DNA of 5,242 nt from Selaginella moellendorffii (taxonomy: Eukaryota > Plantae > Lycopodiophyta), in the NCBI RefSeq assembly GCF_000143415.4, contig NW_003314741.1, forward strand, positions 1-5,242, in the 5' to 3' direction. The position numbers and the translations under genes are program-made. The notes under the pieces are model-generated. The model was given only the letters and a program-made list of their open reading frames with translations, did no database searches and was not told the DNA's origin. Position 1 is the first letter of the stretch, and each line of letters begins with the position of its first letter. Shown in pieces: positions 1 to 5,242 of this stretch.

Positions 1-10
1 CCACCTCTCC
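1..10 (-). ncRNA. First 10 nt of a further copy of the small RNA, truncated by the window edge
   Basis: CCACCTCTCC is the reverse complement of the 5' end GGAGAGGTGG and equals 1250-1259, implying the array continues leftward. Confidence 0.55.
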
Positions 11-217
11 GTTACATATTTCGTGTCGGTTAAATTTATTGGGTTTGTGGGGGAGGGGGTTTAACTAGCAAAGGGCGATTATGGGGAGCGCTTAGTGCGA
101 TTAAGTGGGGCTTAAGTTGGGGCAATCGCGGCCGTCGGTGCGGTGGGGTGGTTGACCGGCGGCGATGAGTTTGACCGGCGGTCCCCGTGACACGTGGCTA
201 GGGCTAGGGTCTGGATA

Positions 218-511
218 TGGGTTTTGCGCGAGTGGGCAAGATCCATGGCTCGGTTTGCGGTGGGACTTGAACCGTTGGAAAGCTTGCGTGAGTCCACCCG
301 TTTCCACAGAAACGGATCTGGATTTCGTCGCTCCACCGGCCCGCACCATTGCGATGGGTTTGACGCTGGGTTTTCGAGCGAGTGGGCAACATCCATGGCT
401 CGGTTTGCGGTGGGACTTGAACCGTTGGAAAGCTTGCGTGAGTCCACCCGTTTCCACAGAAACGGATCCCGATTTCGTTGCTCCACCGTCCCACACCATT
501 GCAATGGGTTT
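218..511. repeat. Internal 150-bp-period direct duplication in the spacer (copy A ~218-361, copy B ~367-511)
   Basis: 228-361 aligns to 378-511 with 7 mismatches in 134 bp, and 241-318 is identical to 391-468. Two copies in units 1, 3 and 4, one in unit 2, truncated in unit 5. Confidence 0.97.
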
Positions 512-560
512 TGTGCTGTTCCCGTTGCCATATCTCGTGGACCGTGGGCCCCCTTTCGCC

Positions 561-615
561 CTTGGGCACATGGGAGCAACTGGGGCGGTGCGCGCAACTG
601 GCCCATGTGGCCAAG
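561..615. repeat. 14-bp inverted repeat (13/14 match) enclosing two GCAACTGG direct repeats
   Basis: CTTGGGCACATGGG (561-574) and CCCATGTGGCCAAG (602-615), with GCAACTGG at 576-583 and 594-601. Present in every full unit. Confidence 0.85.
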
Positions 616-1159
616 TACATTTTTCCATGTCCTGGGCGCCTGCTTTTGTGGTTTTTCCCACGGAAGAAGATGCGTCCCACGTGGCGATCCGTGTGCCCGC
701 CCGCACTCCGGCACCAACGGGGCCGGCCGGCGTGACGCCCCGGTCGCGGCCGTGCCAACGGATCGCGGGCCCCATGCGTGGGCTGCCGCCGGGAGTGCAT
801 CTCACTCTCGAGGAAAACACCGCACTGGCGCTCGGGCCTGCACTGGAACGCGACCCCAGGAGCGCCGTGGCGAAGCCCGCGTCGAGGGCATCGATCCGAA
901 TTGGCTGGGCCCCCCATGCCATGCTGGCACCGTGCGTGCCTTGTCGAAAACGGCACACCCTTGCGACCGCTGGGCGAAAGGGGCAAACCCCGAGAGGTCC
1001 TTGCACCTCCTGTCACTGGGGAGGGTGCCCCCCACGAACACGAACCCAACGGCGCCAGTCCCACGCGAAACGCACGCACGGTTCGCGAGAAAACGGCCCC
1101 CAACGCCCGCATTCTCCATTATTCCGAGAGAATATTCCCTCCACTACTTAAATTGTGCC

Positions 1160-1164
1160 AAAAA
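1160..1164 (-). terminator. Pol III oligo-dT terminator, T5 (also 2264-2268, 3513-3517, 4762-4766)
   Basis: AAAAA on + is TTTTT on -, directly at the 3' end of the terminal stem and the first T4+ run after the inferred start. Confidence 0.7.
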
Positions 1165-1180
1165 GAGGTGGCTCCGGGTG

Positions 1181-1190
1181 GGTCTCGACC
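1181..1190 (-). promoter_or_regulatory. Pol III internal promoter, B-box-like (also 2285-2294, 3534-3543, 4783-4792)
   Basis: GGTCGAGACC versus GTTCGANNCC (T>G at position 2), 45 nt downstream of the A-box end, a normal A-B spacing. Confidence 0.65.
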
Positions 1191-1235
1191 CAGGGACCTA
1201 TTTGAGTGGACTTGTTTTTAGATTGGGGGTCTCTG

Positions 1236-1246
1236 CCACTAGGCCT
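1236..1246 (-). promoter_or_regulatory. Pol III internal promoter, A-box-like (also 2340-2350, 3589-3599, 4838-4848)
   Basis: AGGCCTAGTGG versus consensus TRGCNNAGYGG (1 mismatch), at +14..+24 from the inferred start. Confidence 0.7.
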
Positions 1247-1278
1247 CTACCACCTCTCCGTTACATATTTCGTGTCGG

Positions 1279-1289
1279 TTAAATTTATT
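1279..1289 (-). promoter_or_regulatory. TATA-like AT-rich upstream element at -30..-20 (also 30-40, 2383-2393, 3632-3642, 4881-4891)
   Basis: AATAAATTTAA on the minus strand, 11 consecutive A/T in a GC-rich unit, at the position where TFIIIB/TBP binds Pol III genes. Confidence 0.6.
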
Positions 1290-2263
1290 GGGTTTGTGGG
1301 GGAGGGGGTTTAACTAGCAAAGGGCGATTATGGGGAGCGCTTAGTGCGATTAAGTGGGGCTTAAGTTGGGGCAATCGCGGCCGTCGGTGCGGTGGGGTGG
1401 TTGACCGGCGGCGATGAGTTTGACCGGCGGTCCCCGTGACACGTGGCTAGGGCTAGGGTCTGGATATGGGTTTTGCGCGAGTGGGCAAGATCACATCCAT
1501 GGCTCGGTTTGCGGTGGGACTTGAACCGTTGGAAAGCTTGCGTGAGTCCACCCGTTTCCACAGAAACGGATCCCGATTTCGTTGCTCCACCGTCCCACAC
1601 CATTGCAATGGGTTTTGTGCTGTTCCCGTTGCCATATCTCGTGGACCGTGGGCCCCCTTTCGCCCTTGGGCACATGGGAGCAACTGGGGCGGTGCGCGCA
1701 ACTGGCCCATGTGGCCAAGTACATTTTTCCATGTCCTGGGCGCCTGCTTTTGTGGTTTTTCCCACGGAAGAAGATGCGTCCCACGTGGCGATCCGTGTGC
1801 CCGCCCGCACTCCGGCACCAACGGGGCCGGCCGGCGTGACGCCCCGGTCGCGGCCGTGCCAACGGATCGCGGGCCCCATGCGTGGGCTGCCGCCGGGAGT
1901 GCATCTCACTCTCGAGGAAAACACCGCACTGGCGCTCGGGCCTGCACTGGAACGCGACCCCAGGAGCGCCGTGGCGAAGCCCGCGTCGAGGGCATCGATC
2001 CGAATTGGCTGGGCCCCCCATGCCATGCTGGCACCGTGCGTGCCTTGTCGAAAACGGCACACCCTTGCGACCGCTGGGCGAAAGGGGCAAACCCCGAGAG
2101 GTCCTTGCACCTCCTGTCACTGGGGAGGGTGCCCCCCACGAACACGAACCCAACGGCGCCAGTCCCACGCGAAACGCACGCACGGTTCGCGAGAAAACGG
2201 CCCCCAACGCCCGCATTCTCCATTATTCCGAGAGAATATTCCCTCCACTACTTAAATTGTGCC

Positions 2264-2363
2264 AAAAAGAGGTGGCTCCGGGTGGGTCTCGACCCAGGGA
2301 CCTATTTGAGTGGACTTGTTTTTAGATTGGGGGTCTCTGCCACTAGGCCTCTACCACCTCTCC
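2264..2363 (-). ncRNA. Putative Pol III small ncRNA, vault-RNA-like; copy 2
   Basis: Identical to 1160-1259 (offset 1104). Confidence 0.75.
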
Positions 2364-3512
2364 GTTACATATTTCGTGTCGGTTAAATTTATTGGGTTTG
2401 TGGGGGAGGGGGTTTAACTAGCAAAGGGCGATTATGGGGAGCGCTTAGTGCGATTAAGTGGGGCTTAAGTTGGGGCAATCGCGGCCGTCGGTGCGGTGGG
2501 GTGGTTGACCGGCGGCGATGAGTTTGACCGGCGGTCCCCGTGACACGTGGCTAGGGCTAGGGTCTGGATATGGGTTTTGCGCGAGTGGGCAAGATCCATG
2601 GCTCGGTTTGCGGTGGGACTTGAACCGTTGGAAAGCTTGCGTGAGTCCACCCGTTTCCACAGAAACGGATCTGGATTTCGTCGCTCCACCGGCCCGCACC
2701 ATTGCGATGGGTTTGACGCTGGGTTTTCGAGCGAGTGGGCAACATCCATGGCTCGGTTTGCGGTGGGACTTGAACCGTTGGAAAGCTTGCGTGAGTCCAC
2801 CCGTTTCCACAGAAACGGATCCCGATTTCGTTGCTCCACCGTCCCACACCATTGCAATGGGTTTTGTGCTGTTCCCGTTGCCATATCTCGTGGACCGTGG
2901 GCCCCCTTTCGCCCTTGGGCACATGGGAGCAACTGGGGCGGTGCGCGCAACTGGCCCATGTGGCCAAGTACATTTTTCCATGTCCTGGGCGCCTGCTTTT
3001 GTGGTTTTTCCCACGGAAGAAGATGCGTCCCACGTGGCGATCCGTGTGCCCGCCCGCACTCCGGCACCAACGGGGCCGGCCGGCGTGACGCCCCGGTCGC
3101 GGCCGTGCCAACGGATCGCGGGCCCCATGCGTGGGCTGCCGCCGGGAGTGCATCTCACTCTCGAGGAAAACACCGCACTGGCGCTCGGGCCTGGACTGGA
3201 ACGCGACCCCAGGAGCGCCGTGGCGAAGCCCGCGTCGAGGGCATCGATCCGAATTGGCTGGGCCCCCCATGCCATGCTGGCACCGTGCGTGCCTTGTCGA
3301 AAACGGCACACCCTTGCGACCGCTGGGCGAAAGGGGCAAACCCCGAGAGGTCCTTGCACCTCCTGTCACTGGGGAGGGTGCCCCCCACGAACACGAACCC
3401 AACGGCGCCAGTCCCACGCGAAACGCACGCACGGTTCGCGAGAAAACGGCCCCCAACGCCCGCATTCTCCATTATTCCGAGAGAATATTCCCTCCACTAC
3501 TTAAATTGTGCC

Positions 3513-3612
3513 AAAAAGAGGTGGCTCCGGGTGGGTCTCGACCCAGGGACCTATTTGAGTGGACTTGTTTTTAGATTGGGGGTCTCTGCCACTAGGCCTC
3601 TACCACCTCTCC
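3513..3612 (-). ncRNA. Putative Pol III small ncRNA, vault-RNA-like; copy 3
   Basis: Identical to 1160-1259 (offset 2353). Confidence 0.75.
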
Positions 3613-4761
3613 GTTACATATTTCGTGTCGGTTAAATTTATTGGGTTTGTGGGGGAGGGGGTTTAACTAGCAAAGGGCGATTATGGGGAGCGCTTAGTGC
3701 GATTAAGTGGGGCTTAAGTTGGGGCAATCGCGGCCGTCGGTGCGGTGGGGTGGTTGACCGGCGGCGATGAGTTTGACCGGCGGTCCCCGTGACACGTGGC
3801 TAGGGCTAGGGTCTGGATATGGGTTTTGCGCGAGTGGGCAAGATCCATGGCTCGGTTTGCGGTGGGACTTGAACCGTTGGAAAGCTTGCGTGAGTCCACC
3901 CGTTTCCACAGAAACGGATCTGGATTTCGTCGCTCCACCGGCCCGCACCATTGCGATGGGTTTGACGCTGGGTTTTCGAGCGAGTGGGCAACATCCATGG
4001 CTCGGTTTGCGGTGGGACTTGAACCGTTGGAAAGCTTGCGTGAGTCCACCCGTTTCCACAGAAACGGATCCCGATTTCGTTGCTCCACCGTCCCACACCA
4101 TTGCAATGGGTTTTGTGCTGTTCCCGTTGCCATATCTCGTGGACCGTGGGCCCCCTTTCGCCCTTGGGCACATGGGAGCAACTGGGGCGGTGCGCGCAAC
4201 TGGCCCATGTGGCCAAGTACATTTTTCCATGTCCTGGGCGCCTGCTTTTGTGGTTTTTCCCACGGAAGAAGATGCGTCCCACGTGGCGATCCGTGTGCCC
4301 GCCCGCACTCCGGCACCAACGGGGCCGGCCGGCGTGACGCCCCGGTCGCGGCCGTGCCAACGGATCGCGGGCCCCATGCGTGGGCTGCCGCCGGGAGTGC
4401 ATCTCACTCTCGAGGAAAACACCGCACTGGCGCTCGGGCCTGCACTGGAACGCGACCCCAGGAGCGCCGTGGCGAAGCCCGCGTCGAGGGCATCGATCCG
4501 AATTGGCTGGGCCCCCCATGCCATGCTGGCACCGTGCGTGCCTTGTCGAAAACGGCACACCCTTGCGACCGCTGGGCGAAAGGGGCAAACCCCGAGAGGT
4601 CCTGGCACCTCCTGTCACTGGGGAGGGTGCCCCCCACGAACACGAACCCAACGGCGCCAGTCCCACGCGAAACGCACGCACGGTTCGCGAGAAAACGGCC
4701 CCCAACGCCCGCATTCTCCATTATTCCGAGAGAATATTCCCTCCACTACTTAAATTGTGCC

Positions 4762-4861
4762 AAAAAGAGGTGGCTCCGGGTGGGTCTCGACCCAGGGACC
4801 TATTTGAGTGGACTTGTTTTTAGATTGGGGGTCTCTGCCACTAGGCCTCTACCACCTCTCC
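4762..4861 (-). ncRNA. Putative Pol III small ncRNA, vault-RNA-like; copy 4
   Basis: Identical to 1160-1259 (offset 3602). Confidence 0.75.
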
Positions 4862-5242
4862 GTTACATATTTCGTGTCGGTTAAATTTATTGGGTTTGTG
4901 GGGGAGGGGGTTTAACTAGCAAAGGGCGATTATGGGGAGCGCTTAGTGCGATTAAGTGGGGCTTAAGTTGGGGCAATCGCGGCCGTCGGTGCGGTGGGGT
5001 GGTTGACCGGCGGCGATGAGTTTGACCGGCGGTCCCCGTGACACGTGGCTAGGGCTAGGGTCTGGATATGGGTTTTGCGCGAGTGGGCAAGATCCATGGC
5101 TCGGTTTGCGGTGGGACTTGAACCGTTGGAAAGCTTGCGTGAGTCCACCCGTTTCCACAGAAACGGATCTGGATTTCGTCGCTCCACCGGCCCGCACCAT
5201 TGCGATGGGTTTGGCGCTGGGTTATCGAGCGAGTGGGCAACA

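Follow-up and report, generated by a model that had tools for sequence, protein, structure and literature searches.

A complete, gene-like RNA polymerase III unit repeated with a 1.25-kb satellite of Selaginella moellendorffii

Introduction

Small size, internal A and B boxes and an oligo-T terminator occur together in tRNA genes, SINEs, snaR genes and the genes for viral VA and EBER RNAs as well as in vault RNA genes, and the combination is not diagnostic. The snaR RNAs are about 120 nt long, have an internal promoter, were amplified in tandem arrays and are lineage-restricted. In African great apes they are encoded by small Pol III RNA genes (PMC3045588). Among plants, the tandem tRNA gene clusters of Arabidopsis are described as heterochromatic and mostly silent (PMC12308677), and S. 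moellendorffii has 1290 tDNAs, of which nearly all adjacent pairs are parallel, tandem parallel clusters being typical (PMC2888827). SINE-derived satellites, for example those of scaled reptiles, are likewise tandem repeats with a Pol III promoter module that comes from a small RNA (PMC10702118). Helenus / TRIMp3 elements are LTR elements of small size whose LTRs contain a tRNA-like Pol III unit that has decayed; one fish Helenus family is reported in tandem arrays, and Helenus-1_SMo of S. moellendorffii is the only plant example (Kojima 2024, PMC10886601). Vaults, the particles to which vault RNAs belong, are probably missing from plants (Daly et al. 2013, PMC3762200).

Here we analyse a window of 5,242 nucleotides from S. 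moellendorffii (assembly GCF_000143415.4, contig NW_003314741.1, positions 1 to 5,242), in which a candidate Pol III unit of about 100 nt recurs along a tandem satellite. As in the Arabidopsis Ser/Tyr 'SYY' tRNA cluster and the parallel tDNAs of Selaginella (PMC12308677, PMC2888827), kb-scale repeats follow each other head to tail, and the type-2 Pol III genes, or here the gene-like units, that they carry all point the same way. The array differs from tandem tRNA clusters in that ARAGORN and Rfam do not recognise the unit as a tRNA, and in that the predicted RNA of about 100 nt has its terminal stem farther outside the boxes. Vault RNA (RF00006) is similar in length (about 100 nt), in having A and B boxes inside the gene, in the pairing of its 5' end with its 3' end, in its oligo-U end and in the B-box string UCGAGACCC; the Selaginella unit, in contrast, is satellite-borne, gives no covariance-model match, resembles vault RNA only in the promoter boxes and does not favour the panhandle fold. 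[quoted passage not shown] SINE-derived satellites likewise have a Pol III promoter module in a tandem repeat, whereas the present unit ends at its own terminator right after the stem and has no SINE body or tail. Finally, snaR RNAs are expressed and bound by NF90, while the RNA of the satellite unit is a predicted one. A literature search returned no description of the satellite, nor of any string from the unit.

Results

A complete set of Pol III elements on the minus strand

An earlier note on this DNA had pointed to a small Pol III RNA gene on the minus strand, with a TATA-like element, a purine start, A and B boxes, a terminal stem and a T5 run. All of these elements are present on that strand and at the positions claimed:

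1160..1259, minus strand: candidate Pol III unit of about 100 nt, comprising terminal stem, A box, B box and T5 run
1279..1289, minus strand: TATA-like element AATAAATTTAA, at -30 to -20, within an AT-rich island
1259, minus strand: putative start G
1250..1259, minus strand: 5' arm of the terminal stem, GGAGAGGUGG, with inner-pair probabilities of 0.93-1.0
1236..1246, minus strand: A box AGGCCTAGTGG, agreeing with TRGCNNAGTGG at 10 of 11 positions (RNA positions 14-24)
1181..1191, minus strand: B box GGGTCGAGACC, agreeing with GGTTCGANNCC at 10 of 11 positions (RNA positions 69-79)
1162..1171, minus strand: 3' arm of the terminal stem, CCACCUCUUU, which shares bases with the beginning of the T-run
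1160..1164, minus strand: T5 run, putative Pol III terminator

Read along the minus strand, GGAGAGGTGG is followed by the A box, a 44-nt A-rich middle, the B box, CCACCTC and TTTTT, so that the two boxes, with one mismatch to the consensus in each, are spaced 44 nt apart. AT-rich sequence (60-70% AT) borders the unit on either side, as an island in surroundings of about 30% AT. The terminal stem had been described as 10 bp long. The pairing of 1259-1250 with 1171-1162 is present; the longest helix has 8 Watson-Crick base pairs, or 11 when G-U pairs are counted, and runs partly into the T-run.

Lone A-like or B-like motifs are frequent in DNA of this composition, at about 0.5 each per shuffled monomer, many windows were scanned for features, and the overall fold is unexceptional, all of which would suit a chance constellation of short motifs in a GC-rich satellite that was never a Pol III unit. 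The joint architecture argues strongly against this: an A box (at most 1 mismatch), followed after 30-60 nt by a B box (at most 1 mismatch) and then by T4 within 40 nt, did not occur on either strand of any of 5000 dinucleotide-shuffled versions of the 1249-bp unit. Furthermore, a bracketing terminal helix at least as long as the one observed arose in only about 0.5% of local shuffles (110 of 20000 with Watson-Crick pairs, 78 of 20000 with G-U pairs included), a TATA-like patch lies at -30 within the AT island, and a rough product of these rates falls far below one expected occurrence per genome of such size. We regard a chance origin as very improbable; the evidence supports a complete, gene-like Pol III unit with internal A and B boxes, terminal stem and oligo-T terminator, well beyond chance expectation.

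One identical unit in each monomer of a homogenised satellite

The earlier note had taken the element for a single hidden gene. That description does not hold, as an identical unit recurs once per monomer of a tandem satellite that occupies the entire window:

1..5242, no strand assigned: homogenised tandem satellite with partial monomers at both ends
1160-2263: full monomer (1104 bp)
2264-3512: full monomer (1249 bp)
3513-4761: full monomer (1249 bp)
2264..2363, minus strand: second copy of the unit, identical
3513..3612, minus strand: third copy of the unit, identical
4762..4861, minus strand: fourth copy of the unit, identical
2571..2864, also 218-511 and 3820-4113: paired 150-bp internal sub-repeats, 91-93% alike

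The four identical copies in the window share one orientation and follow each other with a period of 1249 or 1104 bp, so that every repeat of the head-to-tail array has a single complete Pol III unit. The shorter monomer owes its length to a single 150-bp sub-repeat in place of two. Otherwise the monomers are near-identical throughout, the only differences being a handful of substitutions, an indel of 5 bases and the one 150-bp sub-repeat. Because this near-identity extends along whole monomers, the copies of the unit are uninformative on selective constraint.

Several further features of the monomer were recorded. The short monomer has 5 extra bases near 1490, which are missing from the contigs of both public runs compared. 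Every 150-bp sub-repeat contains a perfect 7-bp hairpin, CCGTTTC-TGTG-GAAACGG (for example at 2801-2818, minus strand). A telomere-like doublet, ACCCTAGCCCTAGCC, lies about 190 nt upstream of the unit in each monomer (3798-3812, minus strand) and resembles the plant CCCTAAA repeat or telo-box. As for the identity of the satellite, it is not the known centromere repeat of S. moellendorffii, for which Melters et al. 2013 give a different repeat of 241 bp; their read-based method could probably not have seen a unit of 1.25 kb.

The B box of the unit is not the only motif of its kind in the monomer. On the minus strand of every monomer, four motifs come within 1 mismatch of GGTTCGANNCC; the plus strand has none, and the expectation from shuffles is about 0.28 per strand:

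2616-2626, minus strand: B-box-like motif
2766-2776, minus strand: B-box-like motif
3240-3250, minus strand: B-box-like motif
3534-3544, minus strand: B-box-like motif

The same places are occupied in the other monomers. In a satellite of high copy number, this one-sided excess could point to a role at the level of the DNA, with the satellite serving as an array of TFIIIC sites (a chromatin boundary or organiser) or as a tolerated landing pad for a site-specific retrotransposon. Two of the four motifs, however, belong to one duplicated sub-repeat, the others besides the flagged one are bare of a proper A box and terminator, and the 5,242-nt window contains no LINE insertion; we consider such a role distinctly unlikely as well as speculative.

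Resemblance to vault RNA is that of the promoter and terminator

The earlier note had proposed that the unit encodes a divergent vault RNA, which would imply that the RNA forms part of vault particles together with MVP/TEP1. The unit does have the size (90-140 nt), the internal A and B boxes and the oligo-T terminator of a vault RNA gene, together with the terminal stem, and the string UCGAGACCC, common to the unit and to human vault RNAs, is the B box itself. Furthermore, the human vtRNA1-1 sequence given in the note agrees with the published one, and its alignment to the unit stands out from shuffles of the whole sequence (z = 3.1). Against shuffles in which only the two boxes and the T-run stay in place, the same alignment falls to z = -0.16, and 1747 of 3000 shuffles score as well, which identifies the resemblance as that of a generic Pol III promoter and terminator.

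Rfam, searched at E<=10 over the whole window and, with laxer filters, over a 161-base stretch, gave no match to Vault (RF00006), tRNA, tRNA-Sec, Y RNA or 7SL, and thus none to any of the families for which the earlier note had proposed a search (Vault, tRNA, Y RNA, SRP). The matches that did appear, to Yar_3, TB6Cs1H3 and mir-1281 (E 0.6-5), are at chance level, and the Yar_3 match recurs because the satellite itself repeats.

The folding prediction bears on the same question. The unit has a minimum free energy (MFE) of -32.7 kcal/mol (z = -1.62, with 11 of 200 shuffles folding equally well), so that its overall folding energy is unexceptional, and the favoured predicted fold has the terminal stem closing two local hairpins. 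The vault-like panhandle of the earlier note was built on complementarity between GUGG (1239-1236) and CCAC (1181-1178) and between GACCC (1231-1227) and GGGUC (1191-1187), with 35 nt between them. These complementarities are confirmed, and a fold forced to contain them reaches -32.3 kcal/mol against the MFE of -32.7 kcal/mol, so the pairs can form; what did not stand is the panhandle as the preferred structure, its inner pairs having an ensemble probability of about 0.04. The reading of the change from GCGG/CCGC to GUGG/CCAC as compensatory is likewise unsupported, as it compares two sequences only, with no intermediates, for a pairing of about 4% ensemble probability.

Taken together, the absence of an Rfam Vault match at E<=10, a vtRNA1-1 similarity fully accounted for by boxes and T-run, a panhandle that makes up about 4% of the folding ensemble and the probable lack of vaults in plants (PMC3762200) leave the vault RNA reading with next to no likelihood. 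The array setting also counts against it: the Selaginella unit is part of a repeated monomer, and we know of no vault RNA genes that occur as satellite monomers.

A tRNA-gene-type promoter in a unit that is not a recognisable tRNA

ARAGORN, relaxed thresholds included, found no tRNA on the strand of the unit. A tRNA-Val with an intron that it placed on the opposite strand appears at the lowest thresholds only and was disregarded. In the register set by the B box, a T-stem would have only 2 pairs, and the terminal stem sits six bases outside the place expected of an acceptor stem. [quoted passage not shown] A relic of a tRNA, a tRNA-Sec or a class II tRNA was rejected on these grounds, ARAGORN and Rfam being negative and the similarity to Helenus-1_SMo being at shuffle level. 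The promoter is of the tRNA-gene type, and derivation from a tRNA is not demonstrable at the level of sequence. On the same searches, the unit would be classed neither as a vault RNA nor as a recognisable tRNA, nor as a member of any Rfam family.

A promoter of the plant snRNA type, in which an upstream sequence element (USE) stands at a fixed distance from a TATA box, was also considered. The TATA-like element is present, but the USE (RTCCCACATCG) is absent upstream on the strand of the unit, all matches with at most 2 mismatches lying on the other strand, and this promoter type was set aside. These USE-like matches number 8 in the window against 3.2 expected, a count reached by 3 of 200 shuffles, and they represent two distinct sites per monomer. 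A search of the monomer for a PBS, a polypurine tract and LTRs or terminal direct repeats found none, the 150-bp pair being the sole internal repeat, and a tandemly arrayed TRIM/LTR element of the Helenus kind was rejected.

Public reads and coding potential

Between 92 and 94% of the sampled words of the monomer are present in seven public runs. In two contig runs, which are very small sets (4.0 and 0.9 Mb), the monomer is joined head to tail and covered to an even depth, which doubles only where the sub-repeat is duplicated. Even depth over the whole unit is the behaviour of a high-copy DNA repeat, unlike that of a 100-nt RNA. No read turned up among the 9.2 million records of each of two RNA-seq runs (paired, 150 nt), from libraries that lose 100-nt RNAs without poly(A) and in which the presence of the organism is unconfirmed; this is weak evidence, which counts against long polyadenylated transcripts and says little on a 100-nt Pol III RNA. 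Two metagenome pattern scans for related DNA returned no match.

Four overlapping open reading frames of 301-362 aa lie in different frames on both strands at 2454-3635 and cover nearly the whole monomer. None of the four matched Pfam, and the 362-aa frame has no homologue among 5.8 billion proteins; a protein-coding unit was rejected. The long frames probably arise because the sequence is GC-rich and poor in stop codons, and they could mislead gene callers.

These data also bear on whether the array is a functional, lineage-specific gene family, that is, a multicopy cluster producing an abundant Pol III RNA of about 100 nt and of an undescribed class, comparable to 5S rDNA, primate snaR or tandem tRNA clusters. 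All promoter and terminator parts are intact and correctly spaced, the terminal stem, which would protect the ends of the RNA, exceeds chance, and one unit is kept intact in every monomer. Weighing against such a family are the zero RNA-seq reads, although these are a weak test, the ordinary folding energy (z = -1.62), the lack of relatives in our searches, and with it of any sign of conservation, and the identity of the monomers over their entire length, well beyond the unit. On this evidence we consider a functional gene family unlikely, and would place a little lower still its more specific form, in which a lycophyte-specific, abundant Pol III RNA of about 100 nt, of an undescribed class and with a long terminal stem and two hairpins, is kept by selection in every monomer.

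Discussion

On balance, the evidence leans towards an orphan but complete Pol III unit of type 2 that was carried along passively in the amplification of a high-copy, homogenised 1.25-kb satellite of S. moellendorffii and that is probably largely silent. In order to rationalise this reading on the molecular level, we infer how such a unit would be used. TFIIIC would recognise the B box and the A box where chromatin permits, and TFIIIB would occupy the AT-rich, TATA-like patch at about -30. Transcription by Pol III may then start near 1259-1262 and stop within the T5 run, yielding a predicted RNA of 96-100 nt with an oligo-U tail, whose ends would be paired in a terminal stem of 8-11 bp that closes two internal hairpins. 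The unit most likely originated as an ordinary Pol III gene or a tRNA-like relic, and unequal crossing-over and gene conversion could have multiplied it passively along with its flanks. By analogy with other tandem Pol III gene clusters of plants, such as the tDNA clusters of Arabidopsis, the resulting array is probably largely silenced, a view that fits the many parallel tDNA clusters of Selaginella. Intact promoter parts would also fit a gene under selection, and since the monomers are identical, selection and homogenisation are inseparable here.

The genome provides parallels for both the arrangement and the type of unit: tandem parallel clusters typify the tDNAs of Selaginella (PMC2888827), and with Helenus-1_SMo, S. 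moellendorffii has a further repeat that carries a tRNA-like Pol III unit in decayed form (PMC10886601). As nothing in the present unit is vault-specific, it has no bearing on the question of vaults in plants.

If the unit is a passenger only, it is a clean example of a satellite preserving a fully formed look-alike of a Pol III gene, a second Selaginella case beside Helenus, and a warning for the prediction of small-RNA genes in plants. If it is expressed, the tandem array could potentially yield one of the more abundant small RNAs of this lycophyte, one that belongs to no known family.
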